DNA of 64,000 nt from Andalucia godoyi And28. Taxonomy: Eukaryota > Protista > Jakobida. Positions within the stretch are counted from its first letter, which is position 1, and the number at the start of each line of letters is the position of its first letter. The translations under genes and the position numbers were made by a program. Under the pieces are notes generated by a model. It had not been told where the DNA came from. It did not search any database and saw nothing but the letters and a program-made list of their open reading frames with translations. The DNA is taken from positions 76,892-140,891 of the forward strand of contig VRVR01000037.1 in NCBI GenBank assembly GCA_009859145.1, in the 5' to 3' direction. Below are positions 9,501 to 53,909 of the stretch, one piece after another.

Positions 9501-12500
9501 CCTGGGACATTCACAGGACCTGAGCGAGGTGATGGTGGAATGGACGTCGGCGGCTGCTGGGACTGAGGGGGCGGTGTTGCAGCACGGACGCTAGAAACCT
9601 GCGACGTCGCCGCAGTCGCTGCGGGACCGCCAGCTGTCGACGGAGGACCACTCTGGGAAGCACCAGGAGGAGCACCAGGAGGAACAACGGAACCACCGAC
9701 ACGTTGTTTGACGAGATAGTAGAAGGATCGCAGCTCGTAGTAGATGGCTTGGGGATAGGCACGAGTCAGCAACAGAACAATAGGTTTGACCAACGTAGCC
9801 TCTGGTCGCGCTAGTCCAGCGATAAGATTCTGCATGAGTGGTAACCACAACCATGTGGGCATTCCAGTGATGCATGCCTCAAACGCTTTTGCAATATTGC
9901 CAGATCGGTCTTCGGTCTGCAACAAACAAAGAACGCGAGCCAGATACAAGCGCGCCACCGGTTCCGATGCTGTCAAGGATGCAGGCGAGATATGATAGTA
10001 GTGGGGAGCGAGATACGTGGTTGCGACAGCAGACGATGCCTGCTGGGAAGACACCGGTGCTGCTGGCTGGCCGGGACCTGCTGATGCTGCTGTTTGACCT
10101 GGTGCTCCCGATGGAGCTGTAGTTCCTGCCTGGCCATTCGCGGAAACTGAAGGGTTTGGAACAGCGGTACCAATAGGTGGTGGATGCATAGACCCAGAGG
10201 CCGAGTACCGGATGGCTTGCATGTACGACTGCACGGCAAACTCGGCCCAGAATGTATCCTTCTCCGACCGAGTGAGCATCGAATCACAGAATTTGCCCCA
10301 GGCCAACCACGTTCTTGGTGCCAAGGGAAAGGCAGAACACGCAGCAGCAAACTCTGCATACGCTGTATCGTTCTGCTGGAGACGTTGGTATAACTGTGCT
10401 CGGAGACGCAAGATGTCTGCTCTCTGTTGGTTCACGAGACGCTCGAGAACTTCTTGCTTTAGGACTTCGAGAGCACCAGGCCACTGCGCTTCATGTTGAA
10501 ATGCGCATTTCGCAGATTCGTACACATAAACGAAATGCTCATCTCTGTACGTATCTCGATTTCGCATTTCCTTCAACGACGCGAGACACAAATCCGAACA
10601 TCTCTGTTTCCGTGCGATATGCGCAAACTTGAACACCGTCCAGGATATTTCGGATTGTGCGAGCAACGCAGGACTCGGTTGCTGAGCAGCCTCCGGTCCC
10701 GACGTTGCAGACGGAGGGTTGCCGTACAGCGACAAGATATGCTGTAAAAAGTGTCGTCGCCATGTAGAAATATCATTCCACAAAGACAAATCCTCCCACT
10801 CTCCTGGGAGACGATCTCGCCACAGTTGCAACAATGTGCTGATGTCTCGGGGTTGGATAACTTGCGCCGCGGGAGGAGCGCCTTGGCCTGCCGCAAATGA
10901 TGCTGCGCGTAGTTTATCCAGATCCGTGAGCATACGGGTAGATTCCATCATTTCTTGAAGTTGCTGGAAATTATGAAGCATCAGAAAATGCGAAGGAGTG
11001 CGAAATTCCGGCAGGGCAGCCCATCTCTGAACCGCAAGAGTAACTGCCTGTTGTGCATGCAACTCCGCCTCGCGTAATCGATTCTCAATCAAAGAACTCG
11101 TGATTTGGAACATCTTCAGAAGATGCACGTCATGGATGGATGGCTTTTCGTCGAGGCATCCCTTCACTTGCTTCCATTGTCCTCGCATCCACAAACATTC
11201 TAAGCGCAAAGCCGCAAAACCGCTTTCCTCGGCAAACCGCTTCAAATCCTCCCATTGCTGCAACTTCCGAGCAATCGCGAGGAATTTATCCTCATGCACT
11301 GAACGCTCGGCAGCTTGGAATTCTTCTGTAATAGGTGTGTCGATCATCAAGGCCATGGAATCACGCAGCAATGCTTGCGCTAAGGGCCATTCGCCGTGCT
11401 GCTCCAACGACACAATGAGTTTGAGTGCATCCGAGAATGGAACCGCGCGATGCAGACCGGACAGCACATCCTCTTCGCCCAATAACTTGTAGAGTTCGGC
11501 CAAAGCTTCGTACGACAGCTCAGCGACATGCGCATGGACAGTAGGGATGGAAGACCGCGCGATGTGCAACAGCGAAGCCGACGAAGGCCCAGAAATCTGA
11601 GAACTTGCTGCTGCTGCTGCTGCTGCGGCGGCGGCGGCGGCGGCAGCAGCACTCGAGTGCGAAACCTGAGAGGCAGTGGGCGCCGTAGATGTGGATGCCG
11701 CCATCATGGAAGACGCGCCGGCGGCAGCAATGGCCAGATTGTTGGCACGGACATAAAGATAATGCGACAGCAGCCGCTCAAGCCCTGGAATTGCCAAATG
11801 CCAGGCGTTGAACGTCTTTCCAATAAACTTCATGACGTCGGGAGACACGGCGACGGGAGGACTGCAGGCGAGCGTCCCTTCTAGCAAACAACGAACCACA
11901 TTATACGGCTTCAGGTACTGGCGTTTCTGATAGTCTCGAGTGAGAAGCAGCAATAATGGCCTCGTCATGGCCGCTCGTTCTTCCGGAAGCAGTGTGGACC
12001 AAATGCGCGGAAACAGATGAACCCACAAATCTTGCGCAAGAGACGGAACAGCATCAATGCAGAGGCGGACTGCTTCCAAGGTCGTACCCGCTGAACATCT
12101 TGAAGTTGTGGCACGATGTAGAAAAGATGATATCGACGATCGCATTTCTGCAGAGATATGAAGATCATCGCTCGTTTCAATGTCCATAGACGAAACGGTC
12201 TCGTTTGTCGATTCAGGAGCTGCAACAGACGACAAGCAGAATTTGGGGAGCAGTCGATCGTGTGCAGTTTGGAGACAGGAATCGGCGGACATCGGGGCCT
12301 CAATTCCAATCATCAAGAAAAACGCCAGAGCAAACTGAATCCAAAACACGTCAGAAACTGCTTCCCAGTTGTCAGATTGCGTGACATACAACAGCCATGA
12401 ATAAATATCCCGAGAAAACGATTCTCTGACCTTTCGTTCATCCACGGAAGAAGCGGGGGGACCGAACACCATGGACACGATCCAAGAGGCGAACTGGCGA

Positions 12501-15500
12501 CGTTTAGAAATGTCGGGACATTTCAAACCAACGGGCCAGAAGGTATGAATGCGTGCGATGAATCGCCAATGCGCAATCTGAACTTCCCGGGAGGATCCTG
12601 CTGGAGGACCCGACGTTAGCACGGTCAGCAATATGTCGTATATCTCCGGTTTCAACGACTCCTTGTTAATCGAAGAAGACGCCTCCAGCACACACAGCTC
12701 CTTGATCAACGAAACACGATCCTCTTCGGGGCACAACTTGTCTCCATCGAAACTGGTCACGAGTTCTCGAACGAACGGAAGAAGAATGTGAAGCAGCGAC
12801 GTTTCATAGTGATGGGCATGCAGCAAGTCCCGAATGAATTTGCGAATCTCATGTCCAAACCAAAGTCCGTACTTTCCAAGCAACGTCAGCAATGTTTTCA
12901 TAGCTTCCAACATTGGCATGAACGGGAATGACTGGGCTGAGGAGTACGCAGAAGCATCAACAGCAGGTCTCCGTCCAGAATTCGCAGTTGATCCCTGCTC
13001 CGACGACTGCGAATGAGTCGATACGTTCAATGCAGCCTGGTAGGCAGCCAGGGGTATTGCAGAGTTCTTTTCTTGACCTTGTTGCACTGCAGCAAGGAGA
13101 GGTGCTGCAGCTTCCGTGGCCGACATGAGTTGGCGCTCGAATTTGAAAATGATCTTGATGATGTGGGGTACCAAAAATTTGTGAACAAACCCCACGCATT
13201 TCTCCGAAAGCAATATAATCAATTGCGCAGAGCCTTCCAAAGGAAGGAAGGAGCACTGCGACGGAATTGATTCGGACATTACAAACTCGTACATCGACCG
13301 AATCATATTTGGGAATCGTCGCAGGAAACTTAAAATTCCTGTTTCCGCAATTTGGATCTCCTCCCAAGAGGCAGTGGTACACATTGGAAACTTTTCGATC
13401 AGGGTGCGAATGAACCGCAAAATAGATTCCGTGGCAGCTGGATGAGGAAATACAAAGAGCAGTGCAGAACAACACGAAGACAACTCTTGCAGCGAGCTAT
13501 TCTCAAATATCTGTGGCTGTTTTTGAACAAGACAATGGAGCAAATCAAAAGCCGAACGAATGTACCAAGGATCTGGAACAAGAGAAAACGGTGAGGCATT
13601 GGACGGCTGAGCTTGCGTGGCAGATGACGACGTGGTTGCGGCAGTGGGTCCATCTGCGGCATTTTTCGGGACAAGTTGCAAAAATGAAAGCAGCGGCCCC
13701 ATAGTTCCGCTGGTATGGAGGAGGGAAGTTGTCGAATGCAAAGCAGAACTGGCAACACGAACCGCAAATTCAAACTTCACATTAACGACTTCAGCCCACA
13801 AGTCAAGCGCAACCGAGAACAGGTCCACAGATTTTCGTGCAACTTGACCAATATGGTCTGCACGGCGATGATCCATTTGCGAAGGGGGAACAGACAACCG
13901 CACAAGCAAATGCACCAACATTTCTGCATGACCTTGAGAAAGGCAGAATTCAATATCATCCGATAACGCACCGGGCTGCTCTTTAGTAGCACTCTCGCCT
14001 TCATCAACGTCCATAGGTGTTGCTCCTTGACTTTCGGACTGCTGCCGCGGAGACCCCGATGTTGGAGGAGACAGCAACTCCAATCCTTGAGGTTCGGCTC
14101 TCACGGCAGTGCCTGCTCGTGCAGACTTGATATGAACACGACGTCGTTCCCAATTAACAAGCAACTCCGTCAGCTCGAATAACAATCTCCTGTTGTCTGT
14201 TTGTTGACTCTGCTGCGCATTCAACTTCGAGATGCTCTTCATAATTTGGACAACGAAATGGCGTCTGTACGGGAAGAACAAGTCGGGATGTCGAACCATG
14301 AGCTGCAACACGTGCATCAGCGACGGAAATACATGCCCCTCGTCGTTCATTACACGCTTCGTGAGACGCACCCAGGAAGGCAGACTCTCTGAGTTCGGCT
14401 GGATAGTCACTTGAATTGGCTGCTTCAGACGCAGGGGAAGCGCGTCCGCAAGAACATCCAGCGCCAGCTTAACCATCGGCCTGCCATCAGAATGGTGTGA
14501 CTTGAGGAGATTCGCGTAGACAGTCAAGACAAACTTCTCCGGAGCATCAAATCGACTCAAGAAATAACTGCACAACAAGTACGCTAAGTGCTTCGTAGAC
14601 GAATCAACACAGCGCAGACAATGCCAAGCGAACTTTGCAAATGCAGATCTCCTGTCCAAAATGTCCTTTGAAAAGTGTCGAACAAACAGAATTGCAAGAT
14701 GCAACACTTCAGATAGGTCGTGCTCATTGAACCTGCTCAGCGGCTCGGCTCCCTCTTGATCAATCAGTAATTCCACAAACCGGTGGATGACCTCGGAAGA
14801 GACGGCTCCGCTTTTGGAGCGCACAACAGAAGTCGCCATGAGAGGATACAGCAGATTCTTCATCGCCAACGCCTTCCAGGAATGAGAATAGTTTCCGCGC
14901 AGGACTCTATCAATAACATCGCACGCGTACGAAGTCACTTCGACAGGCGATAACGTCGATGGCAGCCAATCCCAAAAGAAATAGTGACATTCTGTCAGAT
15001 CAATGACACCAGTCTTTTCTGAAAACGCATCCAACAGTAGGAAGACAATATCACGGTCTCGTGAGATTTTGAAGAGGTGAAGCAGACAAACAGCAAGTCG
15101 ACCCTTCAAGTCTCCAACATCCAAACCTGGAGGCACAGAAGATAAAGAAAACACTTCCTGCCAAAGGCGAAACAGCATTTCACGGATGGACAGAACGTCT
15201 TCGGAAGATGCATGCGATAGGTGCTTGAGGAACTTCGACACCACAAACACGGCACGCCATCGCACTTCAGCAGCCGCGGTGGCATCAGGACTCAGACCTT
15301 CAAAACTGAGTAGTCGCTGCACTATCTTGGCTGGCGTGAGATTAAACAGCGCAAACAAAGAGTCGCCATTGGGAGGTTCTAACATATACAAGAACAGTCT
15401 GAAATACTGAGGATTTGACAGGTGCGCGGAGAAAATATCAAGGGTCTGGGCAGGATACTTTCGCAAGAACTTCACCAACGGAGGCCGGAATGCACTGTAG

Positions 15501-18500
15501 CTTGGTCCGGCTTTATCAAACCACGCCCTTTCCAGGTCGAACACGACCTTTATCAAACTGTCAGTCAACTTTGCAGCTTCATGTGGAAGAAGTGAGAAGA
15601 GTAGGATGATTTTGGAGATGGCGGTGATTGCGATGTCGGACGTTGGCCAAGACGCACGATTTTCCAGGATTTCTCTTGTGTCCTGGAACTTCTTCAGGTT
15701 CTCCAGCATCTGTTCCCCTAATTTGACATTAAAAAATGTAGTACACAACTCAAAAAGGTGATACAGCATGTCAAGCACTGAGAGAGAGAGAGATCGATAA
15801 TCAGACATGGGTTTCAGCATCGGTCTAAGACACGTTTGCAACAAATCTTTCGGTAATCGCCCTTGTCGCAACAAAGTATTCAATCCGGATTTCACAACAT
15901 TGACGATTTCCGTGTTCGGAGACTTCAGATACTTGAAAAACAAATCAATAATCTTCGTTCTCAACTCTCCATACGAATCTTTTCGGAATTCGACTGCCGC
16001 TAGAAATTCGCGGAGAAGTTTCAGTCCTGCAATGCGATATGCCAGAACCACGCGAGTGTCCGCTTCTCGAATGTAGGACGATGACTCTTCTTTTCCAGAA
16101 CAAAGGGACAATGCAGATTGAATGATGTTCACAATCTCGGCATTGGCAGGAAGTATCGGTGGCGACAGAGACAAGAAGAATGCAAGAGCATCCAAAAATC
16201 CTGTCTGGACCACCACACTCATCTGCCGGAATCGCTTATACGAAAGAAATCTGCCCAAGATTTCTCGGAACCCTTCCAGAAGTTGGGAAATATGCTTTCC
16301 AGTAACAGATACAATAAGATTCAAGGCATCCTGGCAAGCATTTCGGACAGGCGACCAGTGACCACTCAAATCATAATAGAGAATGAGAAGAATGAACTGC
16401 AAAGGACAAGGACGCTCGATCATACTCATGTCCTTGTCAGCCTGGAGCGAAATACGGATAGTTCGAAACAGCAGACGTCGTGCATCCTGAAGAATCAACA
16501 ATGCGTTCTGGCTGGCGGAAACCTTGACAATGAAAATGCAGCACTTCATAACATCAAGTACGTGCTGGCGGATCCAAAACCGCGAACACTCTGCCAAACA
16601 AAAATCAATGGCGTGCAACAAGCCAGGACGCTGCCACAAGCCTCCAAAGACGTGGTGGGACGAACGCGAAAACACATGAGTCCAAAATAGACTCGTGATC
16701 AGCTTCGATTTCCCGTCGTGCAGACAAAATTCGGACAGTTTCTTGACAAACATCTGCAATACTAACGAGCTGACTTTGGACAGGTTCACACTCTCGACTA
16801 CGTAAGCATCGACAACCGCGTCCAAGAACAAATCAGCAATAAGTCCGTGGGATTTGATTCTCATTTGCTGCTCCACAAAAAGCATCGCCATGAAGGAGGT
16901 AAGCTGCTCCATTAAGGCTTTTGCACGTGAAACGATCTCATCACGCTGGAAATCGCACATGCAGGCAAGCAAGGAATGGACACAGTTCTTGAACGCTTGC
17001 TGATACGTTTCGAGTTCGTCTGCTTGGATGCGGAATCCGCTGCCTTTGTATGGATTGAAATCCTCTGGAATAGACTTGCTACGGGACTCGACACTTCGTC
17101 TCACGTGAACAAAGCCACCGAGACTGAAGGACGAGGAAGATGGGATGCGATCTTGCGGGTCAAAAAACGACATCAGGACTGAAGAAACGAAATCAAACAG
17201 AAGGCATTTGCTAGCAAACTTGTCGTCATTCGCACGGTCATTCAAATCAACCAACAACCGAAACGACGCAAGAAGAAACTGATCAAGGCCGATATCGACG
17301 TCACATTCATCCGAGTCTTTCTTTTGTTTCTTGGAAAGGGGTGGACCAAGCGCCGAGTCACGACCATTTAGTCTGAATTGAGCAATTATGCTGGAGATGT
17401 GTTTTGAGGACAGCTCGGCAGGAGGGGGCAGTTTCAAAAACCGTCGATTTCGAGCACCCAGCTTTCCTAGAATACGAAGCACAACTGCTCCGAAGCCACC
17501 AGAAACGGGGCGGAGATGTCGAGAGAGCGCCGTAAAAAGATCGTCGTAGACCGGTATAATGATTGGCTCAATGCCATCCGGTTTCAATCCGTCGACCCAC
17601 ATGTCGAGAGCACGCAAGCCGAGATTGCACAGCAGTTCGGAATTGGATCGCAATGCAATAATGACAGGTTTCATCAGCAGAGAAAGGTACGGCAGCAAGG
17701 ACTGCAACTTCGCGGGAATTGTGAGACAAACCTCAACAATCAGCTCCGCATTGGAAGGATGATGATGATTATTCAGCATGGACGTCAGCGTCCTCAAAAT
17801 CTCCGGGATGAGATTAAGAAACAGCGGGTACAAATTTTCCACCTTGCCAACCACCACAAAACGAAACAGACCGCGAAGTATGTACAAGAATACGTCCGAC
17901 GATGGTTTTTCCTGAGCATGAAGAAGACAGGAATTGACAATCTGCTTGATGTAAGGCTCGACAATCTGCTCAATTCCCGGAACGTGCGAGATGGTTGAAA
18001 ACACGAGCTTGAAAAGGCGTACTATCAAGGCAGTTTCGTCTCCTCCAGAACTCAGTTTCGGAAGTCGTTCCACAAGAAAGCTGAGGAAAACATCGCAAGC
18101 AGCTTTTCCAACCGAAGGATTGGGCAACAGAAATGCAGGACACAAAAGAAAGAGTCCTGGACTGGACAGAAGCATGTTGTACAAAACCGAAATTTCCGCA
18201 CGGAAAATCTCCTTGAATCCATTTTGGTCCATGGAAGCAAATAACGCGCAGAAGTTCTCCATGATCTCGCGATCCTCCGTGGAAGGTTGATCGTTGCCGC
18301 TTGCGGTGGAAACATACGCCAACACTTCTAAACCCCTACGCAGCAACTGGCGCAGCAGTCGAATCTCATCCGGCGAAAATGCTCCTGACGAAGGAGGCCC
18401 CGATCGTCCTTGAGGAGCTTTGGCCATTGAAGAAATTCCACTCAGGACATTCTTCAGGCCCAAAATGAGGGTTTTGACGAGTGTACGAATGTCCTTTTGC

Positions 18501-20170
18501 AGATCGAGAAAGTCCACGCCAGAACGACAACCAAGAGCATTGAGCGGATGGACGGACAATACGGAACACTCGCCACTTTGCGGAACTTCCGCTTCCGCCG
18601 GATTCGATTTTGAACTCGCTCCGGTGGACGTGGACGTGGATGACGCCGCGGAAGACGAGGGCCCCTCCACGTTTGTTGAGGATGACAGTGTTGGCAACGA
18701 ACCAGACATTCCAGCAGACGACAATGCCGCTGATGAAGAAACGGAACCTCCCCCAGGGGATGCAAGAGAAGACGCAGCGCTTTTTCGCAGCATGAATAAC
18801 AGCGACCGAAACTTGTTGACAAACGCAGTGCAGATTTTGTTCATGATCGTTTGGCCGTATGCACGCTTCTCAGGTGAACACTTGTCATCGGCGGAGACGT
18901 GTTTGAAAACGATCTCAAAGAGATGCACCAGTAACTTGATGGACATGCCTTGCATCGACACACCGAGCTGAAGGTCAAACAAGTTTCGAATGAAGAAGTC
19001 TGTCGTTTTTTGGATCTGCGAAAAGGTCATATGATGACGAACATTGTGGATAAACTCGGCAAGGGTTGAGTAGGCCAACGGTCGAAGAGTTTCGAGACCT
19101 GCTCGTGAATTTCCAAGTAACGCCCTGTCGTTCAGCAGCACGTCGAGATGCTGCACGAACTGATCTCGCATGTCTGTCTCGAGAATATGACGCAAGATGA
19201 CTATTAGCTCCCTACGGATCGACACTGCATCATCCGGACACCGGACGAACAAATCTGTAACAACCGTTCCGATTACTTCACGGATATGAGACAGCTTGTC
19301 TGGCTTGACTCTCAAGAAATAGGTCAGAAACGATGCGGTCTTGATCTGCGCTGCCATGTAATCGGAATATGGTTCTCGCGAGGAGAGGTCCGCTGTATTT
19401 GGCACGCGTCTTTCCAGCAACATTTCTCGCATGAGCGACAGCAATTCATTGTAGAACTCCGGGTCGAAGGAATTTGGATAGGACTGCAGACAAATCACAA
19501 TCACCAGAGGACACTCAATCATGATTTTGAAGGATTTTGATGCGGGCGCAACGACTTTCCCGCAGGCTGTCGGCGCAATTGTCGAATTCAGATTGCTTTC
19601 CACTTGCTCACTCTTGACAAGCACGACTCTGTGATGCGATGCTTCTGATGCATGTTGCTGGACATACTGTGCGATAACGCTTGGATCCGGCGCAGGCCCG
19701 AGAGCAGTAGAGATCATTTCCTTGAACGAGCTGTACAGGCCTTTCACAAACGCGACGAACGGTCGCACAAATTCTGGTAAATCAGGGCGAAATACCTTGT
19801 GGAAATCCATAATGATCTTGAGGGCCATTGCCGCCACATCTTCATTGTCCCTCTCCAACACATCAATGGACATTTGCATGATTCGCTTTGAATATGGTCG
19901 CAGCGCATCCACAGGAGGAAACTTGAGCAGAATGTCAAGTACCATCCAGCGCACTCTGTGCCATTCGTTTGCAGTGAACTGTGGCGGGACCGTTCGAAGC
20001 ACATTTTCAAACGAGGGAACCACAACTTCAAGAAATGGAGTGTATTCTGCAGAATGCACGATCGACTCTACATTGTTTCGAATGCGAAACAAGTGCTGAA
20101 ATGAAATCTCGGCATTTTCCAGCGTTGCAAGCTGCATCAAATGTTGTGCATGCAGCTTTATCTCTTCCAT
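6542..20170 (-). CDS. TRRAP: TRRAP/Tra1 PIKK-family pseudokinase (SAGA/NuA4 scaffold), ~4542 aa, apparently intronless
   Basis: Likely start ATG at 20170 (MEEIKLHAQHL); the ORF-track extension to 20416 translates poly-T/A sequence. Tra1 HEAT N-terminus (EENxxxxLKII equivalent DNEDVAAMALKIIMDFHK, RPLAYSTLAEFIHNVR, LRILGKLGARNRRFL), FAT region, kinase-like domain without catalytic residues (ILGIERRTPDKI, VPFRLTP), FATC end LANMNPTYQAWF. Confidence 0.96.
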   Translation of the reverse strand: MEEIKLHAQHLMQLATLENAEISFQHLFRIRNNVESIVHSAEYTPFLEVVVPSFENVLRTVPPQFTANEWHRVRWMVLDILLKFPPVDALRPYSKRIMQMSIDVLERDNEDVAAMALKIIMDFHKVFRPDLPEFVRPFVAFVKGLYSSFKEMISTALGPAPDPSVIAQYVQQHASEASHHRVVLVKSEQVESNLNSTIAPTACGKVVAPASKSFKIMIECPLVIVICLQSYPNSFDPEFYNELLSLMREMLLERRVPNTADLSSREPYSDYMAAQIKTASFLTYFLRVKPDKLSHIREVIGTVVTDLFVRCPDDAVSIRRELIVILRHILETDMRDQFVQHLDVLLNDRALLGNSRAGLETLRPLAYSTLAEFIHNVRHHMTFSQIQKTTDFFIRNLFDLQLGVSMQGMSIKLLVHLFEIVFKHVSADDKCSPEKRAYGQTIMNKICTAFVNKFRSLLFMLRKSAASSLASPGGGSVSSSAALSSAGMSGSLPTLSSSTNVEGPSSSAASSTSTSTGASSKSNPAEAEVPQSGECSVLSVHPLNALGCRSGVDFLDLQKDIRTLVKTLILGLKNVLSGISSMAKAPQGRSGPPSSGAFSPDEIRLLRQLLRRGLEVLAYVSTASGNDQPSTEDREIMENFCALFASMDQNGFKEIFRAEISVLYNMLLSSPGLFLLCPAFLLPNPSVGKAACDVFLSFLVERLPKLSSGGDETALIVRLFKLVFSTISHVPGIEQIVEPYIKQIVNSCLLHAQEKPSSDVFLYILRGLFRFVVVGKVENLYPLFLNLIPEILRTLTSMLNNHHHPSNAELIVEVCLTIPAKLQSLLPYLSLLMKPVIIALRSNSELLCNLGLRALDMWVDGLKPDGIEPIIIPVYDDLFTALSRHLRPVSGGFGAVVLRILGKLGARNRRFLKLPPPAELSSKHISSIIAQFRLNGRDSALGPPLSKKQKKDSDECDVDIGLDQFLLASFRLLVDLNDRANDDKFASKCLLFDFVSSVLMSFFDPQDRIPSSSSFSLGGFVHVRRSVESRSKSIPEDFNPYKGSGFRIQADELETYQQAFKNCVHSLLACMCDFQRDEIVSRAKALMEQLTSFMAMLFVEQQMRIKSHGLIADLFLDAVVDAYVVESVNLSKVSSLVLQMFVKKLSEFCLHDGKSKLITSLFWTHVFSRSSHHVFGGLWQRPGLLHAIDFCLAECSRFWIRQHVLDVMKCCIFIVKVSASQNALLILQDARRLLFRTIRISLQADKDMSMIERPCPLQFILLILYYDLSGHWSPVRNACQDALNLIVSVTGKHISQLLEGFREILGRFLSYKRFRQMSVVVQTGFLDALAFFLSLSPPILPANAEIVNIIQSALSLCSGKEESSSYIREADTRVVLAYRIAGLKLLREFLAAVEFRKDSYGELRTKIIDLFFKYLKSPNTEIVNVVKSGLNTLLRQGRLPKDLLQTCLRPMLKPMSDYRSLSLSVLDMLYHLFELCTTFFNVKLGEQMLENLKKFQDTREILENRASWPTSDIAITAISKIILLFSLLPHEAAKLTDSLIKVVFDLERAWFDKAGPSYSAFRPPLVKFLRKYPAQTLDIFSAHLSNPQYFRLFLYMLEPPNGDSLFALFNLTPAKIVQRLLSFEGLSPDATAAAEVRWRAVFVVSKFLKHLSHASSEDVLSIREMLFRLWQEVFSLSSVPPGLDVGDLKGRLAVCLLHLFKISRDRDIVFLLLDAFSEKTGVIDLTECHYFFWDWLPSTLSPVEVTSYACDVIDRVLRGNYSHSWKALAMKNLLYPLMATSVVRSKSGAVSSEVIHRFVELLIDQEGAEPLSRFNEHDLSEVLHLAILFVRHFSKDILDRRSAFAKFAWHCLRCVDSSTKHLAYLLCSYFLSRFDAPEKFVLTVYANLLKSHHSDGRPMVKLALDVLADALPLRLKQPIQVTIQPNSESLPSWVRLTKRVMNDEGHVFPSLMHVLQLMVRHPDLFFPYRRHFVVQIMKSISKLNAQQSQQTDNRRLLFELTELLVNWERRRVHIKSARAGTAVRAEPQGLELLSPPTSGSPRQQSESQGATPMDVDEGESATKEQPGALSDDIEFCLSQGHAEMLVHLLVRLSVPPSQMDHRRADHIGQVARKSVDLFSVALDLWAEVVNVKFEFAVRVASSALHSTTSLLHTSGTMGPLLSFLQLVPKNAADGPTAATTSSSATQAQPSNASPFSLVPDPWYIRSAFDLLHCLVQKQPQIFENSSLQELSSCCSALLFVFPHPAATESILRFIRTLIEKFPMCTTASWEEIQIAETGILSFLRRFPNMIRSMYEFVMSESIPSQCSFLPLEGSAQLIILLSEKCVGFVHKFLVPHIIKIIFKFERQLMSATEAAAPLLAAVQQGQEKNSAIPLAAYQAALNVSTHSQSSEQGSTANSGRRPAVDASAYSSAQSFPFMPMLEAMKTLLTLLGKYGLWFGHEIRKFIRDLLHAHHYETSLLHILLPFVRELVTSFDGDKLCPEEDRVSLIKELCVLEASSSINKESLKPEIYDILLTVLTSGPPAGSSREVQIAHWRFIARIHTFWPVGLKCPDISKRRQFASWIVSMVFGPPASSVDERKVRESFSRDIYSWLLYVTQSDNWEAVSDVFWIQFALAFFLMIGIEAPMSADSCLQTAHDRLLPKFCLSSVAAPESTNETVSSMDIETSDDLHISAEMRSSISSFLHRATTSRCSAGTTLEAVRLCIDAVPSLAQDLWVHLFPRIWSTLLPEERAAMTRPLLLLLTRDYQKRQYLKPYNVVRCLLEGTLACSPPVAVSPDVMKFIGKTFNAWHLAIPGLERLLSHYLYVRANNLAIAAAGASSMMAASTSTAPTASQVSHSSAAAAAAAAAAAAAAASSQISGPSSASLLHIARSSIPTVHAHVAELSYEALAELYKLLGEEDVLSGLHRAVPFSDALKLIVSLEQHGEWPLAQALLRDSMALMIDTPITEEFQAAERSVHEDKFLAIARKLQQWEDLKRFAEESGFAALRLECLWMRGQWKQVKGCLDEKPSIHDVHLLKMFQITSSLIENRLREAELHAQQAVTLAVQRWAALPEFRTPSHFLMLHNFQQLQEMMESTRMLTDLDKLRAASFAAGQGAPPAAQVIQPRDISTLLQLWRDRLPGEWEDLSLWNDISTWRRHFLQHILSLYGNPPSATSGPEAAQQPSPALLAQSEISWTVFKFAHIARKQRCSDLCLASLKEMRNRDTYRDEHFVYVYESAKCAFQHEAQWPGALEVLKQEVLERLVNQQRADILRLRAQLYQRLQQNDTAYAEFAAACSAFPLAPRTWLAWGKFCDSMLTRSEKDTFWAEFAVQSYMQAIRYSASGSMHPPPIGTAVPNPSVSANGQAGTTAPSGAPGQTAASAGPGQPAAPVSSQQASSAVATTYLAPHYYHISPASLTASEPVARLYLARVLCLLQTEDRSGNIAKAFEACITGMPTWLWLPLMQNLIAGLARPEATLVKPIVLLLTRAYPQAIYYELRSFYYLVKQRVGGSVVPPGAPPGASQSGPPSTAGGPAATAATSQVSSVRAATPPPQSQQPPTSIPPSPRSGPVNVPGQVSADPLRRPGSGQSVSAPAIPQNVGSVSAVVPTSATMSASTTGLSGSGAPLLLQGSVPNVGTTAPPPSTPSVTAAVSNVGTPNAPAAQSTANSGPPPGPIPSLSSPPASTTRFDPLPLQSIRKYSDEVMQQLLASATPFLHEIETILKEVGSRLKPETEEELARALGYVARWCAGAHPSQPVPPSIKNEMLGILTLYFPLEGEVIRSSSFFRENSQRFRKEFFNEIAVPGHVTSVQLGASPTPPSSNGGPNFMYVLKQLTVGELRSELKNWLVMLGSRIAPLTDVQPLDTLSRYLAEHVASETEIPGQYLSTSISEPLREPSVDKHDRLDGFLSEARSVQRAGVRCRRIVARAQSGRLYPFVVVSCMSSETLVTMRSHDRIVHVLAQINRILERSRDVRRRGAGLHLQVSVPLSQRIRFVSEPEGLDGAFHREQKPFSMYDAFFPSQQQLQQLQSQSSQPSQSSGSNSQNAQQTQTAPSIASVFFSSTSSHAGAVSGLSYSSTAVARQSAGAALQNAMQPHTALRLPPPIAFQSSLSQHATSSSWVSFEQIQHSHAMKAAVPIDWHYDAFWRAYESCRHDPVAAFATLLDRQASLTQLSVKSSSSSLDGPFFLKNALLQRFESFSSFYAFRRQLTTQLAVYSLLEYILGIERRTPDKISVSLATGQLGQWMYHPQFHADTCAIDPYERVPFRLTPEIENLLSIFGIEGLYLGCMSAAAASLNKNRSLLENVIRLYVRDEVTHWMFLRHSSQPLPAGYVQSVFSPSVSSSPSCGPLASPGGALLPSQVPPMPMPSASASVNANLGSMPQASAGTPSAASADVKPTFGNLPQAPGSTPTAGGIPQSGSLTPSNASQHSQSGPPPGPTTTGTPGPALPSASSGPVLSSVLTLEQTYDYVLAFANPVGPSNGAFFGGKHLPANETEFRERANKNVNVIMNRCAEVAPLTALEAVESAKIVNDRVYRLIQAARNVSNLANMNPTYQAWF

Positions 20171-20767
20171 TCTCGTCCAGTCTGTATCGATCCTCAAACT
20201 AGACTCTTTCTCTCCTCTCACGACAAGAAGAAAATCAAAAATGGTGATTGTTTTTTGTTTTTGTTTTTTGTTTTTTTTCTCTTTGAATAAACAAGCAAGG
20301 CTTCTTTTGCAAGTGGAATGTTCGAAAGTTAAGGATGAAGAACAAGAAAAAGACGCGCCTTCGCAAAGCACGCCTGGCGCTCCCTGCTGCATGGCGAAAA
20401 ATACGCACACCCACAAGCAGGAAATTGCTGCCTCCTGGCTCTGCTACAGCCAGTACTTTTCCCCTACTGAGAATTTCCGGATTAGTCAATCCTCAATTGT
20501 GCGAACAAACGCGCGCGGCAGGCAAGGGAGACGGAGAGATTTTATGAGCAATTGAAAAGATCAACAGAAAGAGTTTTCATTCTTCTCGCAAGCGGCACAC
20601 ACAGACACACACAACGTACACAAGCACAAACACAAACACATACACATATTCAGTAAACAAGGGAAAGGCAAACGAGAACACGAAAGAAGAGACTGAAAGG
20701 GGATTTCCTTTCTTCCAGACATTCCTTCATTCATTCATTTAATTCTCGGTTGCGTCTGTGTTTTCTC

Positions 20768-38148: not shown

Positions 38149-38385
38149 TAGACGATCTGCTCCGCAGGATTATTTCTGCAGTAGATTTTCACCTTTTCTG
38201 TATTTTCCAATACAGACAAGCTACACGCCCCAGAGGAGGAGGTACTGTCTCTCATCCTGAGCGTGAACGGGCTGCTGGGCTCTGTGCTTCGTTTGATACG
38301 CTGCACGGCCCTCGCGGTGAGATGATCGCAGCTGGCCTTTTCGCAAGGATTGGCCGAGCAGGGATGGGGAGACGTTCTGATGGGT
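38149..38385 (+). ncRNA. U3: U3 small nucleolar RNA
   Basis: Ordered U3 boxes: GAC box at 38151, box A AGGATTATTTCT 38166-38177, box C' GAGGAGGA 38233-38240, box B CCTGAGCGTGAA around 38256-38267, box C AGATGATCG 38320-38328, box D CTGA 38377-38380. Terminal stems CCC/GGG and GTCTCTCATCC/GGATGGGGAGAC, two internal hairpins, and a T-run downstream. Ends approximate. Confidence 0.85.
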
Positions 38386-50542: not shown

Positions 50543-51346
50543 ATGGCTGGTCTTAGCGCAGCGGAAAAGGAACTGTATCTTCGCGACGGATTTATTGCAT
50601 GCCGCAATCTGATTTCGGCAGAAGAGATTGCGGAAGTAATGAAAGCCTGTGAGGTTTTGGCAAACAAGCGTCCTGCCCCAGGCTGCGATCAAGAGATGAT
50701 GTATTACGAAGACTCGATGCAGAATCCGTCCCAGCGCATCCTCTCAAGAATCGAAAAGTTTGTCGAAACCAATGCGGTTCTTGCCAAGATTGCATCTGAT
50801 GAACGCATTTTAAGCCGAGTTGCCGACTGTCTGTCTCTTGGGCGTGAGTATCCTTCGGCGAATGGCTCCTCGAATTCAACGCCTATTCTTTTCAAAGAAA
50901 AGATTAATTTCAAGCTAGCGAATGGCGGGCGCGGATTCGAAGCTCACCAGGATATCCAACCTGGTTGGGACGACTATGCACCGTACTTTGTGTCCGTGCT
51001 CGTGACCATTGATCCGTCGACTCTGGAGAACGGGTGCTTGGAGCTCGCAGGCGGACACCACAAAAGAGGTCTTCTTGGAGAAAAGTGGAAGCCACTTACC
51101 GAGGACCAGCTCAAGGGCGTGGAGTTTGTCAAGTTCCCGACTCAGCCGGGCGATGTCGTGTTCTTTGATTGCTACGTGCCGCATCAATCGGGCCCGAACA
51201 TGAGTGCACACATTCGTAGAAATATGTATCTTACGTACAACCATCCGCACGACGGAAATCATCGGATCCAGTACTATGCCGACAAGAGAAAGGCTTTTCC
51301 TCCTGACAACGAGCGCAACGGAAAGCAGTATGCATACAAGGTGTAA
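50543..51346 (+). CDS. Fe(II)/2-oxoglutarate dioxygenase, PhyH family, PhnY (2-aminoethylphosphonate dioxygenase)-like
   Basis: LFKEKINFK..GG.GF.AHQD (HxD), ENGCL, PGDVVFFDCYVPHQSGPN..RRNMYLTYN (distal His and 2OG-binding Arg), and the C-terminal YYADKRKAFPPDNER typical of PhnY-like proteins. Confidence 0.85.
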   Translation: MAGLSAAEKELYLRDGFIACRNLISAEEIAEVMKACEVLANKRPAPGCDQEMMYYEDSMQNPSQRILSRIEKFVETNAVLAKIASDERILSRVADCLSLGREYPSANGSSNSTPILFKEKINFKLANGGRGFEAHQDIQPGWDDYAPYFVSVLVTIDPSTLENGCLELAGGHHKRGLLGEKWKPLTEDQLKGVEFVKFPTQPGDVVFFDCYVPHQSGPNMSAHIRRNMYLTYNHPHDGNHRIQYYADKRKAFPPDNERNGKQYAYKV

Positions 51347-51552
51347 TATTTGTTTGCGCCAATAAATGCAGGAGCCCGTCCCACTGCCTTTTCTTTCTCC
51401 GTTTTCTTTTCTTTCTTTTTTCTTTTTTTTCTTTTGTGGTTTTTGAATTGCATATCGAAATAGTACTGGTAAGCGCACCGCTCAAGCCTGGGAACCATCG
51501 CTTGCTCGTCCAAACCAGAAACGAGCAAACCCCGTACACGCACAGCCTACAT

Positions 51553-51688
51553 TGTAAACTAATCATGCATGATCACTGCTAACCATGCATGATCAGTCTT
51601 GAATCCAAATTGAATTCACACTCAATTCGGAAGCGCGTAGGCCCCAACACGCCTCACGGCGTTCTTCAGATAGATGTTCCGCGCTCCG
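51553..51688 (-). ncRNA. Candidate omega-RNA (Fanzor guide scaffold) overlapping the 3' end of the remnant ORF
   Basis: Minus-strand stems: GGAGCGCG (51687-51680) with CGCGCUUCC (51637-51629), enclosing ACGCC-GUGA-GGCGU (51662-51649, GNRA loop); CCGAAUUGAG-ugugaa-UUCAAUUUGG (51630-51605); and a 13-16 bp stem CUGAUCAUGCAUG/CAUGCAUGAUUAG (51596-51559). The first two long stems compete for 51630-51629. G-U wobbles become mismatches on the plus strand. Confidence 0.65.
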
Positions 51689-51900
51689 TTCCCAATCTCG
51701 ATTCATCGGTGAGCCACTTTCTCAGCGCGACACGTTGTTCCTGAGAAGGGTGCATTTTGATTCTGACGGCCCTAGCAGCAGGCGTAGTGACACGTGGTCT
51801 CTTAGGAGGTCTGCGGGACCTAGGAGGCCCTGTATCGAGCGGCGTAGGCGCAGGCGAATGCGTCATCCCAGCGCACTCACGCCCATATTTGAATTATAAA
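51553..51900 (-). mobile_element. Internally deleted Fanzor/TnpB (Fanzor2/IS607-TnpB-like) remnant; ends approximate
   Basis: ATG 51866 leads to RAVRIKMHPSQEQRVALRKWL (51773-51711), an OrfB/TnpB N-terminal HTH motif. It is immediately followed by M-N-R-D-W-(+1 G at 51691)-N-G-A-R-N-I-Y-L-K-N (51706-51661), the RuvC-III DRDxNGARNI motif, then TGA at 51624-51622. More than 1 kb of the nuclease (WED/RuvC-I/II/Zn finger) is missing. Confidence 0.8.
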
Positions 51901-52268
51901 AGTGGACCCAAAAAACCAAACCAACGAATGATAGAATAGATGGCTATGGATGCTGCCTTAAAGAGTATTGAAAATGCAGAGCCTGTGTCGCAAGCTGAAT
52001 TTTGGCCGAGCGTGTGTAAGCACGAATTCCTTGTGAACCAAACGTGCTAGTGTCGGCCAGTATTGACCGTGTCTGTTTCGTCATTTATTCAACGGCTGAC
52101 ACCGACTTCTATATGGGCGATCGTGCCTTGGTATCTATTCTGCACCCGTTGCTGAATTTTTTCTCTTTCCCAATTAATTACACTCTTTTCACCTGTCACA
52201 TTATTTTTACGTTAATTTAATTTTTTTTTAATAAACACGAGAATCCGGGGAGAAATCAAAAGCAGATC

Positions 52269-53909
52269 ATGTCGTTGGCTGCAACCACAACTTCTGGATC
52301 TCATGGCCGTGTTTTGCGGAAGCGGTCTTCGGGTCCAGCAGACTCTTTAGCAGATCGTTTGGACAAGATGTTGCAGCCGAATGTTGGCGGTGGAGGATCT
52401 GTTTCGCCGGCTTCCCCAAACTCTGTTTCTCCCTTTTCCTCCCCTCAAGCAGGAGCCTCGAAACAGTCTCCAATCCGCCCGAACACCTCCTCCAAGTCCC
52501 CTCGGCCTGGAACGACAACCTCTGTGTGTGGCGGTGGCAATGTCCTCGGAACTGGAATGGGCAGTGAGTACTATGAAGAAAAGTACCGGAATTTGAGCTC
52601 TGAGAATGAATCGCTCAAGAATGAACTTGCTCGAACCCAAGAAGCATTGCAGCTGCGCCAGACAACGTATGCGCGGAAAGAGACTCGAATGGCGAAAGAA
52701 ATTGCAACGCTAAAGGAGCAGTTGGATGCTTTGGTGTTGTCACGGACGGATACTGCGGACCAGATGCGTGTTCTTCGCGATATGAACGCGACGATCCAGG
52801 TGGGAATCGACTCGATGCAGGACAAAACTCAGTCTGCGTTGCAGGCGCATGAAGATGAGCTTAAACGGTCGTTCCGTGCGCAGCTGCATGAAGTGGAGAA
52901 GCAGCTTAGCGAAGAACGACAGAGGCACATGGACGGTGCTGCACAGTATCTGGAGCAAATAGCACAACTTAAAGGCGAACTTGCATGGATGAAAGAAGAA
53001 GCAACTCGGCTCGATGCTGGAAACCAAAAGTACAGACAAGAATCGCAGCATTTAAGAGTCCAGTATCGGGCGCAGGAAGACGACCGAACGACGCTCATCA
53101 AGCAGATTGCAGTCGTCAAGATGGAAAATGCACGGCTTCGGGATGAACTTGCAAAGTCGGTTCTCCTTTCTGCGTCCGCGGCCGACGGTGCGGCAAACAA
53201 TAACAATAGCAGTAACATTGGCTTGGGAGGGAGCGGGAAATCCGTGTATAATGGTAATGGTGGTGCCGGTGCCGATAATGTATCTGTGGTATCAAAGTCG
53301 CATGATGCAACCTCGTTTATTTCTCCGTTTGCAATTTCGACGCCAAGAGGCTCAACGATGCTTGCGTCGACTGGAATGGCCGAGACTGTGGTTGAACAGG
53401 CACAGCTTGCCGATATGCACAAGCGATATGAAGACACAGTGAAGCGTATGCGACGTCTTTTGGAAACTGAGCGTGCGCATCTCCGGCAGGTTCGATCGGC
53501 ACATGTTGCACTGCTGGCAGAGCGCACTGAATTGGAAGGGTTTTTGCGACAATGCATCGAGGATGTTCGTGGCGAGCTTGCACAGGCACTTAAGAACACA
53601 AGTCAAGACGGATCGCACTCGCCAACAATTCCGCCTATTACTAAACCAGCAGATCGACAAAAGGTTGTTGAAACCCTTCTTGCGAAAGAACGGGTTTTGG
53701 CGCTGCTTTATGACAAGAGTTTCCCGACGAAGAAGCAGGTTGTTACCAGACTGCCCGCAATGGTCTCGTCGCAGGAATGGAGCCACGATACAAGAGCGAC
53801 AAACACGATCGACGACATGAGCATGCGAGGCGGAAAATTGCCCGTGGAAGAAGCGGTTCTTGCCAGACTAAAGGCGTTTGTCGAGGAAGAGGAAGAAGAC
53901 CAAGACTAA
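52269..53909 (+). CDS. Coiled-coil protein, 546 aa, possibly a basal body/ciliary family (BBOF1/CCDC176-like C-terminal motif)
   Basis: Long heptad-rich helices; the C-terminal RTELEGFLRQCIEDVRGEL...ERVLALLYDKSFP resembles motifs of ciliary coiled-coil proteins (family tentative). Confidence 0.75.
   Translation: MSLAATTTSGSHGRVLRKRSSGPADSLADRLDKMLQPNVGGGGSVSPASPNSVSPFSSPQAGASKQSPIRPNTSSKSPRPGTTTSVCGGGNVLGTGMGSEYYEEKYRNLSSENESLKNELARTQEALQLRQTTYARKETRMAKEIATLKEQLDALVLSRTDTADQMRVLRDMNATIQVGIDSMQDKTQSALQAHEDELKRSFRAQLHEVEKQLSEERQRHMDGAAQYLEQIAQLKGELAWMKEEATRLDAGNQKYRQESQHLRVQYRAQEDDRTTLIKQIAVVKMENARLRDELAKSVLLSASAADGAANNNNSSNIGLGGSGKSVYNGNGGAGADNVSVVSKSHDATSFISPFAISTPRGSTMLASTGMAETVVEQAQLADMHKRYEDTVKRMRRLLETERAHLRQVRSAHVALLAERTELEGFLRQCIEDVRGELAQALKNTSQDGSHSPTIPPITKPADRQKVVETLLAKERVLALLYDKSFPTKKQVVTRLPAMVSSQEWSHDTRATNTIDDMSMRGGKLPVEEAVLARLKAFVEEEEEDQD

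Follow-up and report, generated by a model that had tools for sequence, protein, structure and literature searches.

Genomic Setting and Extent of the Element

A 922-bp intergenic spacer of the jakobid Andalucia godoyi And28 hosts, on its minus strand, what is very probably a single "ghost" copy of an IS607-like Fanzor2 transposon that has kept its ends and its omega-RNA scaffold. The spacer belongs to a 64-kb stretch of the nuclear genome (the window; scaffold VRVR01000037.1, GCA_009859145.1) and is flanked by an open reading frame (ORF) for a PhyH-family dioxygenase (50543-51346, plus strand; Pfam PF05721, E = 7.6e-24), which is convergent to the remnant, and by a 546-amino-acid coiled-coil ORF (52269-53909, plus strand). 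The nuclear genome of A. godoyi (VRVR00000000) is compact and intron-poor, with a size of ~20 Mb, and its sampled spacers have a mean length of 217 nt (PMC7050145); by that measure the 922-bp spacer is long. Subtraction of the element leaves ~369 bp (173 + 196 bp), which is near the usual spacing of the genome, and no gene is interrupted by the element. An exact-protein look-up found no identical protein on record for the PhyH ORF.

The whole internally deleted element covers ~553 bp (51543..52095, minus strand), with a left-end motif and the omega-RNA terminus bracketing a coding remnant. The pieces follow one another as left end (52095), leader, start codon with a nuclear localization signal (NLS) and the first protein motif, deletion junction, RuvC-III stub with the C-terminal tail, omega-RNA and right end, the last placed at ~51543 (+/-2). 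In order and spacing, these pieces follow the layout of intact elements. The initial annotation of the window had described a derivative of ~350 bp at 51553-51900. That interval holds the coding remnant and most of the RNA part but stops ~195 bp short on the leader side, where the conserved left end lies at 52095; the element is longer than was proposed.

Coding Remnant

The residual ORF (51666..51866, minus strand; ATG 51866-51864) encodes a 66-amino-acid product, MTHSPAPTPLDTGPPRSRRPPKRPRVTTPAARAVRIKMHPSQEQRVALRKWLTDESRLGTERGTSI. It comprises the original start, a disordered, basic, NLS-like N terminus, the first Fanzor2 motif and an out-of-frame run over the junction to a TGA, and it holds PPRSRRPPKRPRV followed by RAVRIKMHPSQEQRVALRKWL. 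No identical gene was on record for this mini-ORF in the exact-protein look-up. The leader between the left end and the start codon (51867..52072, minus strand) was read directly and is non-coding. It includes a TATA-like TTTATAA at 51900-51894, 28-34 nt upstream of the ATG, which may serve as a promoter. The leader had no homology to the IS607 transposase TnpA or to other loci.

Relatives were gathered with the Fanzor2 protein of Naegleria lovaniensis (NlovFz2; XP_044554645.1, supplementary file 9 of Saito et al., 2023) as the query. There were 4919 matches, 120 of which were listed, and a profile hidden Markov model of 121 sequences (NlovFz2 and the 120 relatives) was run with all filters off on 2323 six-frame fragments of the window. 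The N-terminal fragment, PKRPRVTTPAARAVRIKMHPSQEQRVALRKWL (51711..51806, minus strand), ranked first of the 2323 (E = 5.4e-4 window-wide) and aligned with profile positions 151-182, where the consensus is kkkkkekapagkakkirlyPtkeqketLkkWf. The motif breaks off after W-L, and the G..RW.YN that would follow is absent. The C-terminal fragment ranked third (E = 0.5; profile positions 523-535). When the two were fused with a 1-nt correction, the E-value was 7.6e-7 and the second stretch fell at positions 519-534, an alignment that scored 10.8 bits with one extra G skipped vs. 3.8-6.2 bits unskipped. Agreement with the 120 relatives is plain motif by motif, as in relative P0020 (SAAKARKIRVYPSAEQRRVLLKWFGTARWTYN … DRDIHAARNILLKNASLFGF). 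The two motifs had initially been assigned to the N-terminal segment and the RuvC-III motif of TnpB/Fanzor2, and each half indeed aligns to the correct end of the profile.

Generic libraries were almost blind to fragments this short, and a family-specific profile was therefore needed. Pfam produced a single weak match, in which the C-terminal stub covered the final 11 positions of the Cas12f1-like_TNB profile (E = 0.16); none of NCBIfam, PHROGs and the PDB (phmmer) matched the peptides. A word-indexed protein search with the fused peptide found no match, its comparison with viral contigs revealed no related loci, and a phmmer search of the 66-amino-acid ORF against 1.84 billion representatives returned 0 matches. 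No full-length related protein was found in public protein sets with the fragment as query. The lack of a significant match in generic libraries and the empty phmmer search are what would be seen if the resemblance were due to chance and the locus were an ordinary small gene or intergenic sequence, for example a 66-amino-acid basic nuclear protein beside the hairpin region in the 3' untranslated region of the convergent PhyH gene. We regard this as hardly credible, since four independent features (left end, N-terminal motif, RuvC-III, and omega-RNA with its pseudoknot) occur in Fanzor2 order and spacing and each is first or near first in window-wide scans.

The deletion junction lies at 51704..51711 (minus strand), where the N-terminal match stops at profile position 182 and the C-terminal match begins at position 519 of 549. 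The stubs are only a few bases apart in the DNA, and ~336 profile positions (~1 kb; 183-518), corresponding to the rest of the WED domain, REC, RuvC-I, RuvC-II and the zinc finger, are missing. No counterpart of positions 183-518 and no further Fanzor-like fragment was detected in the window, in line with the proposal that the catalytic core had been deleted. With these positions gone and the stubs adjacent, the locus is a gene remnant and not a functional member of the Fanzor2/TnpB family. A complete RuvC fold (RuvC-I Asp, RuvC-II Glu, CxxC…CxxC zinc finger) is absent; the nuclease is certainly not encoded at this locus.

The C-terminal remnant (51622..51703, minus strand) carries the RuvC-III motif and the tail out of frame with the ORF. 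It can be read as ATG AAT CGA GAT TGG (MNRDW) at 51706-51692, with NRDW at 51703-51692, an extra G at 51691, NGARNIYLKNAVRRVGAYALPN at 51690-51625 and a TGA at 51624-51622. The N-terminal part, NRDW and the portion from NGARNI onwards thus occupy three reading frames, so the C-terminal remnant is not translated from the ORF. RuvC-III is present as NRDW-(+1 G)-NGARNIYLKN, frameshifted and with Asn in place of the first Asp of DRD, a residue that is invariant in an alignment of 16 sequences (A1). It resembles intact variants of the form DRDWNGARNIYLK. Among intact relatives from metagenomes and giant-virus bins, L122 has DRDWNGARNIYLKSFL (exactly DRDWNGARNIYLK) and L084 has DRDWNAARNIYLKNITLL / DRDWNAARNIYLKN. 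The occurrence of the exact RDWNGARNIYLK variant in intact relatives supports reading the extra G as an insertion. The minus-strand mini-ORF with its basic stretch, the TATA-like sequence ~30 nt upstream of its ATG, and MNRDW(+1 G)NGARNIYLKN with a stop at 51622 had all been pointed out in the initial annotation and were found where it placed them.

The gap in the coding sequence might be attributed to the assembly, if a full-length Fanzor2 gene stood at this locus and its internal 1 kb had been lost by repeat collapse. The genome is a 454/Illumina draft with 150 gaps, and its authors left out repeat-rich subtelomeric scaffolds with much transposon- and viral-like sequence (PMC7050145). The junction, though, is clean and without Ns, the remnant has independent defects (the +1 G and NRD for DRD), repeat collapse usually breaks contigs and does not make precise internal deletions, and no other copy is known that could have caused a collapse. 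An assembly artefact is accordingly very unlikely.

Omega-RNA Scaffold

A homologue of the omega-RNA scaffold (118 nt; 51543..51660, minus strand) shares 39 nt, among them the stop codon, with the end of the coding remnant. Its position and length are like those of the experimentally mapped, 117-nt omega-RNA of NlovFz2. The stretch 51660-51543 folds with a minimum free energy of -56.3 kcal/mol (z = -8.3), the seventh lowest among 6390 windows of the same length, and of the 15 windows with the lowest energies no other has a GC content below 0.57.

The conserved parts of the scaffold were defined from an alignment (A2) of 20 non-redundant loci (NlovFz2 and L002, L012, L015, L016, L018, L019, L024, L032, L034, L037, L040, L042, L046, L049, L062, L075, L077, L089, and L095). 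After DRDxNGARNI, all 20 show CGTTGGG-N6-(N)CCC, which in Naegleria is the start of the mapped omega-RNA. Base-pairing of the six loop bases with the 3' terminus of the scaffold (columns 19-24 with 195-200) gives a helix with strong covariation, which includes pairs such as GCUACA/UGUAGC, GCUUCA/UGAAGC, ACCUAG/CUAGGU, CCUUU/AAAGG and GUUACA/UGUAAC. When the two helices (the GGG/CCC stem and the loop-to-3'-end helix) were evaluated jointly, 93% of the cells were paired vs. 47-59% when the strands were slid, 28 cells had changed on both sides, and the observed value was reached in none of 500 shuffles. The loop-to-3'-end helix agrees with the pseudoknot in the structure of ApmFz2, in which the 5' part of the scaffold pairs with positions -4 to 0 (PMC11832414). 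In one Fanzor2 clade, this pseudoknot joins the GUUGGG…CCC loop to the last 5-6 nt before the right end and marks the boundary between scaffold and guide in unannotated loci.

In A. godoyi, the 5' motif is GTTGGGGCCTACGCGC (51633..51648, minus strand), with GTTGGG at 51648-51643, 27 nt before the stop codon (relatives range from -81 to +24 nt). GTTGGG and CCC are invariant in 20/20 relatives; the A. godoyi stem is GGG...CGC and has two of its three pairs, the invariant C at column 27 being a G. The loop GCCTAC (51642-51637) pairs with GTAGGC (51545..51550, minus strand), the 3' strand of the pseudoknot or closing helix, and the GCCUAC/GUAGGC helix is kept in all 6 of its 6 pairs. The TG after GTAGGC is taken as the end of the scaffold and of the element, and one extra base adjoins the 3' end of the scaffold. 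The 3' block together with the helix scored 18.7 bits, inside the family range of 18-23. Between these elements, folding predicted a hairpin with a 12-bp stem that spans the stop codon (SL-a; 51604..51631, minus strand) and one with a 20-bp stem formed by two TGATCATGCATG-type repeats (SL-b; 51556..51599, minus strand). Relatives have a hairpin in the place of SL-a and a long hairpin in that of SL-b, and the two-hairpin layout was predicted likewise in L089, L077, L034, and L095. The 5' motif, the mid motif TGCATGGT and the 3' motif are collinear with those of the family.

A descriptor was built from weight matrices for the 5' and 3' blocks and joint pair terms for the helix, with lengths of 60-160 nt; it was trained on the 20 relatives only and was blind to the adjacency of the stretch to the coding stub. 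Its top match in the whole window was exactly 51660-51543, with 24.9 bits vs. 12.0 bits for the runner-up, a score that was matched in 2 of 100 simulated windows. The nhmmer match to the 5' block (51649-51637) was the second in the window (E = 4.1). The simple rule of GTTGGG with a 6-nt complement within 60-170 nt was not significant by itself (2 window matches, 0.84 expected in simulations), and Rfam gave no match to an omega-RNA family in the window. The suggestion that the scaffold had been retained is thus borne out by the 5' motif, the covarying pseudoknot helix and the two hairpins, which run from ~30 nt before to ~80 nt after the stop codon. By analogy with related systems, the guide would start at ~51542 with TGCGTGTACGG....

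Many relatives have the 5' motif inside their C-terminal tail, where it is read as …LGLTP… or …VGAYPLG… according to frame, and the A. godoyi tail …RRVGAYALPN is likewise a translation of it. More generally, the recurrent Fanzor2 C-terminal peptides …ETLGLTPS…, …VGAYPLG… and …VGATPLL (tail peptides from P0007-P0043 and loci L018, L019, L032, L037, L046, L061, and L089) result from reading the conserved omega-RNA 5' motif GUUGGG(G/U)C(U/C)UAC(C)CCC in one frame or another, and the RNA rather than the protein seems to impose their conservation. In supplementary file 9 of Saito et al. (2023), one NlovFz2 copy (NW_025407826, 3434-3480) has a 25-nt tandem duplication of the 5' motif (…ACCTTGTGTGTTGGGTCTTCCCC ACCTTGTGTGCGTTGGGTCC…), which moves its annotated omega-RNA start to 25 nt from the stop codon; the distance is 2 nt in a different copy.

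Element Ends

The left-end terminal motif is CCGTTGAATAAATGACGAAACAG (52073..52095, minus strand), and its first three bases, CCG, are the target-adjacent motif (TAM) of NlovFz2, which was determined experimentally as 5'-CCG. The A. godoyi left end, CCGTTGAAT-AAATGA, is matched by those of NlovFz2 and of a multi-copy Fanzor2 element from metagenomes (the P0025 element). For the Naegleria loci, Saito et al. (2023; PMC10432273) annotated CCGTTGAAGCCAAATGAACAATT as the NlovFz2 left-end motif. P0025 is among the relatives whose termini most resemble the A. godoyi stubs, and 10 metagenomic copies of its element, identical inside and unrelated outside, begin to agree at CCGTTGAATGGAAATGAACAG; their common sequence stops ~108 nt past the stop codon at …TTTTTTGTAAGCG. 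A comparison of CCGTTGAATAAATGA (52095-52081) with the Naegleria and P0025/L015 left ends showed the left end to be conserved. The pattern CCGTTGAAN{0,4}AAATGA, which fits Naegleria, P0025 and L015, had one match in the 64-kb window vs. 0.04 expected, and this match was on the minus strand, 215-229 nt upstream of the ATG.

Position 51499 (…GAGCAAGCG) was also weighed as the right end and rejected: it has no pairing with the 5' loop, and the family-trained descriptor picked 51543.

The P0025 element is represented by L002-L011 (Joint Genome Institute metagenome contigs; L002:195-2271) and is a multi-copy, ~2.1-kb, IS607-like element with sharp ends, CCGTTGAATGG… and …TTGTAAGCG. A serine-recombinase TnpA (…ICYARVSSAHQHADLERQ…) is encoded directly upstream of its Fanzor2 ORF, in a frame that the recorded gene calls miss, and its 5' flanks are mostly A-terminated. 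A tblastn search with this TnpA found no trace of a TnpA serine recombinase in the A. godoyi window. TnpA is not required for this type of element, since active NlovFz2 elements also are without it.

Several results weigh against the identification of a bounded Fanzor2 element. The left-end pattern was composed after the A. godoyi sequence had been seen, and its use in IMG/VR gave 116 viral loci, none with a Fanzor2 gene, which are chance matches. A four-sequence nhmmer model of the left end was below significance and did not recover the site window-wide, and an nhmmer model of the 3' block failed in the same way at the right-end site. Because these small models gave no stand-alone significant score, both boundaries rest on patterns, base-pairing and position. 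Only one copy was seen, with no second one in the window or in the overlapping 21.6-kb locus, and no empty site or sister copy pins the ends to the base. The 5' block scored only 6.2 bits vs. ~21 for family members, a shortfall due to a GT insertion and the G for C at the invariant stem position. A covariance model (R1) derived from an unrefined MAFFT alignment, in which the variable interior is misaligned, missed the locus and gave 1.1 bits in local search. Finally, the 12- and 20-bp hairpins are near-perfect and look too well kept for an old fossil; with the pseudoknot helix also intact, they favour an RNA that is young or still constrained, or an element still in use.

The IMG/VR matches to the left-end pattern, being due to chance, are uninformative on a giant-virus origin.

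Origin and State of the Element

The element fits the definition of a ghost derivative (Saito et al., 2023), having no nuclease ORF but retaining the omega-RNA region between two preserved ends. An internal deletion of ~1 kb would have joined codon ~55 of a Fanzor2 gene to its last ~26 codons, removing the WED/REC core, two of the three RuvC catalytic motifs and the zinc finger. It would have left a left end with a TAM-like CCG, a leader with the start codon and NLS, a frameshifted RuvC-III/C-terminal stub, and the complete omega-RNA scaffold up to the right end. In known systems of the TnpB/Fanzor type, an intact element would have its RNA transcribed from this region and extended into the flank. 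By the same analogy, an RNA starting at 51660 would have the flank past 51543 for its guide segment, and that guide RNA could steer a Fanzor2, here supplied in trans, to cut CCG-flanked empty sites so that the element would be copied back.

The state that best fits the locus is probably that of a non-autonomous remnant that is no longer selected. Relaxed selection is suggested by the frameshift, the Asp-to-Asn change and the changed base in the invariant RNA stem. As far as the biology of the window is concerned, the element is probably inert. Considerably less likely, though to be taken seriously, is an active non-autonomous element, a possibility that the initial annotation had raised with caution, in which the ghost would be transcribed and its omega-RNA loaded by a Fanzor2 encoded elsewhere (e.g., on unassembled, transposon-rich subtelomeric scaffolds) and which would be kept or spread through the cutting of CCG-flanked empty sites. 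Such activity would account for the gutting of the ORF alone while both ends and the whole RNA scaffold were retained, and for near-perfect hairpins (z = -8.3) and a pseudoknot with 6/6 pairs intact; ghost Spu-1 offers a precedent, and the omission of transposon- and viral-like subtelomeric scaffolds from the assembly leaves a place for such a nuclease gene. It sits poorly with the failure to find a full-length relative with the fragment as query, with the single copy in the window, and with the changed base of the invariant GGG/CCC stem and the extra base beside the 3' end. It is doubtful that the locus is a working guide-RNA gene acting in trans, whose omega-RNA would be expressed and loaded by a Fanzor2 elsewhere and would either secure retention of the ghost by RNA-guided homing or have been co-opted by the host.

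Comparison with Known Systems

Among the systems closest to the A. godoyi remnant is NlovFz2 (PMC10432273), whose host is also a discoban protist. The NlovFz2 left end starts CCGTTGAA...AAATGA with CCG as the TAM, its basic, disordered N terminus is followed by (K/R)IRLYP..EQ...L..W, its C terminus has DRDxNGARNILL, and no TnpA gene lies inside the element. The 117-nt omega-RNA of NlovFz2 begins 12 nt before GTTGGG and has the GGG/CCC stem, whose loop is paired with the terminal ...AAAGGCG; the annotated last bases of the RNA are …AAATAAAGGCG (Saito et al., 2023). In contrast to the A. godoyi copy, NlovFz2 copies are full length (477-495 amino acids), multi-copy and biochemically active. The A. 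godoyi copy has ~336 fewer residues (RuvC-I, RuvC-II and zinc finger) and is frameshifted, its leader is shorter (229 nt compared to roughly 350-460 nt), it has other internal hairpins, and its version of the invariant stem carries a single base change.

IS607-like eukaryotic transposons encode a TnpA serine recombinase and Fanzor2 (Bao and Jurka, 2013; PMC3627910). The P0025 element has this arrangement, with the recombinase ORF upstream of Fanzor2 in ~2.1 kb, whereas the A. godoyi element has no trace of TnpA; the two share the left-end motif, the omega-RNA 5' motif and the logic of the pseudoknot, and their protein termini are closely similar (…ARNILLKNASLFGF vs. …ARNIYLKNAVRRVG). ApmFz2, a mimivirus Fanzor2 studied by cryo-electron microscopy (PMC11832414), also has a pseudoknot, which links the 5' part of its scaffold with the nucleotides just ahead of the guide, and long, dispensable stem-loops between the two. 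It differs in its scaffold of ~205 nt, which has no detectable sequence similarity, and in its TAM, GGG.

Ghost Spu-1 of Spizellomyces punctatus is a derivative of Fanzor1 that is ~550 nt long, is found at 134 loci and has ends and an omega-RNA-like region without the Fanzor ORF (Saito et al., 2023; PMC10432273). The A. godoyi element is alike in size, in the retention of both ends and the omega-RNA region, and in being a non-autonomous derivative of a transposon with an RNA-guided nuclease. Spu-1 has 30-nt inverted repeats and an unrelated ~550-nt interior, whereas the A. godoyi element is of the Fanzor2/IS607 type, was seen once and is a simple internal deletion with both coding stubs. In bacteria, palindrome-associated transposable elements (non-autonomous IS200/IS605 derivatives) and orphan omega-RNA loci are similarly short and keep ends and RNA structure without the protein genes; they differ in being prokaryotic, in the HUH TnpA transposase chemistry and in sequence.

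Other Features of the Window

A hairpin of 12 bp (GTTTGCTCGTTT…GGACGAGCAAGC; 51500-51531, minus strand) lies immediately beyond the predicted right end, in the place expected for the guide. It is ~155 nt downstream of the convergent PhyH stop codon and might belong either to the 3' end of the neighbouring gene or to the original target. It ends …CAAGCG, and this point was weighed as the right end of the element and rejected. Between the PhyH stop codon and the element, at 51389-51443, is a tract of TTTTCTTTCT… repeats that is polypyrimidine on the plus strand and polypurine on the minus strand. A U3 small nucleolar RNA gene (38151-38385, plus strand; RF00012, 70.8 bits, E = 2e-13) was the sole Rfam match at the gathering threshold in the window. 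An uninterrupted ORF of 4624 amino acids (6542-20416, minus strand) adjoins one of 2122 amino acids (54-6422, plus strand).

Implications

The kind of element, a ghost Fanzor, is already known; its host lineage is new. No report of a Fanzor in jakobids or Andalucia was found in the searchable literature, and none appears in the portions of the supplementary tables of two Fanzor surveys that were available. The remnant extends the host range of Fanzor2/IS607-like elements to Jakobida, a deep-branching group, and suggests the presence of a full-length Fanzor2 in A. godoyi, now or in the recent past. If the guide does act in trans, A. godoyi would provide the first natural example of a Fanzor2 guide locus working in that way, which would imply an active RNA-guided nuclease system in jakobids. 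The covarying pseudoknot and the conserved left-end motif are of use for annotating such elements, including their ends, their guides and their ghost copies.

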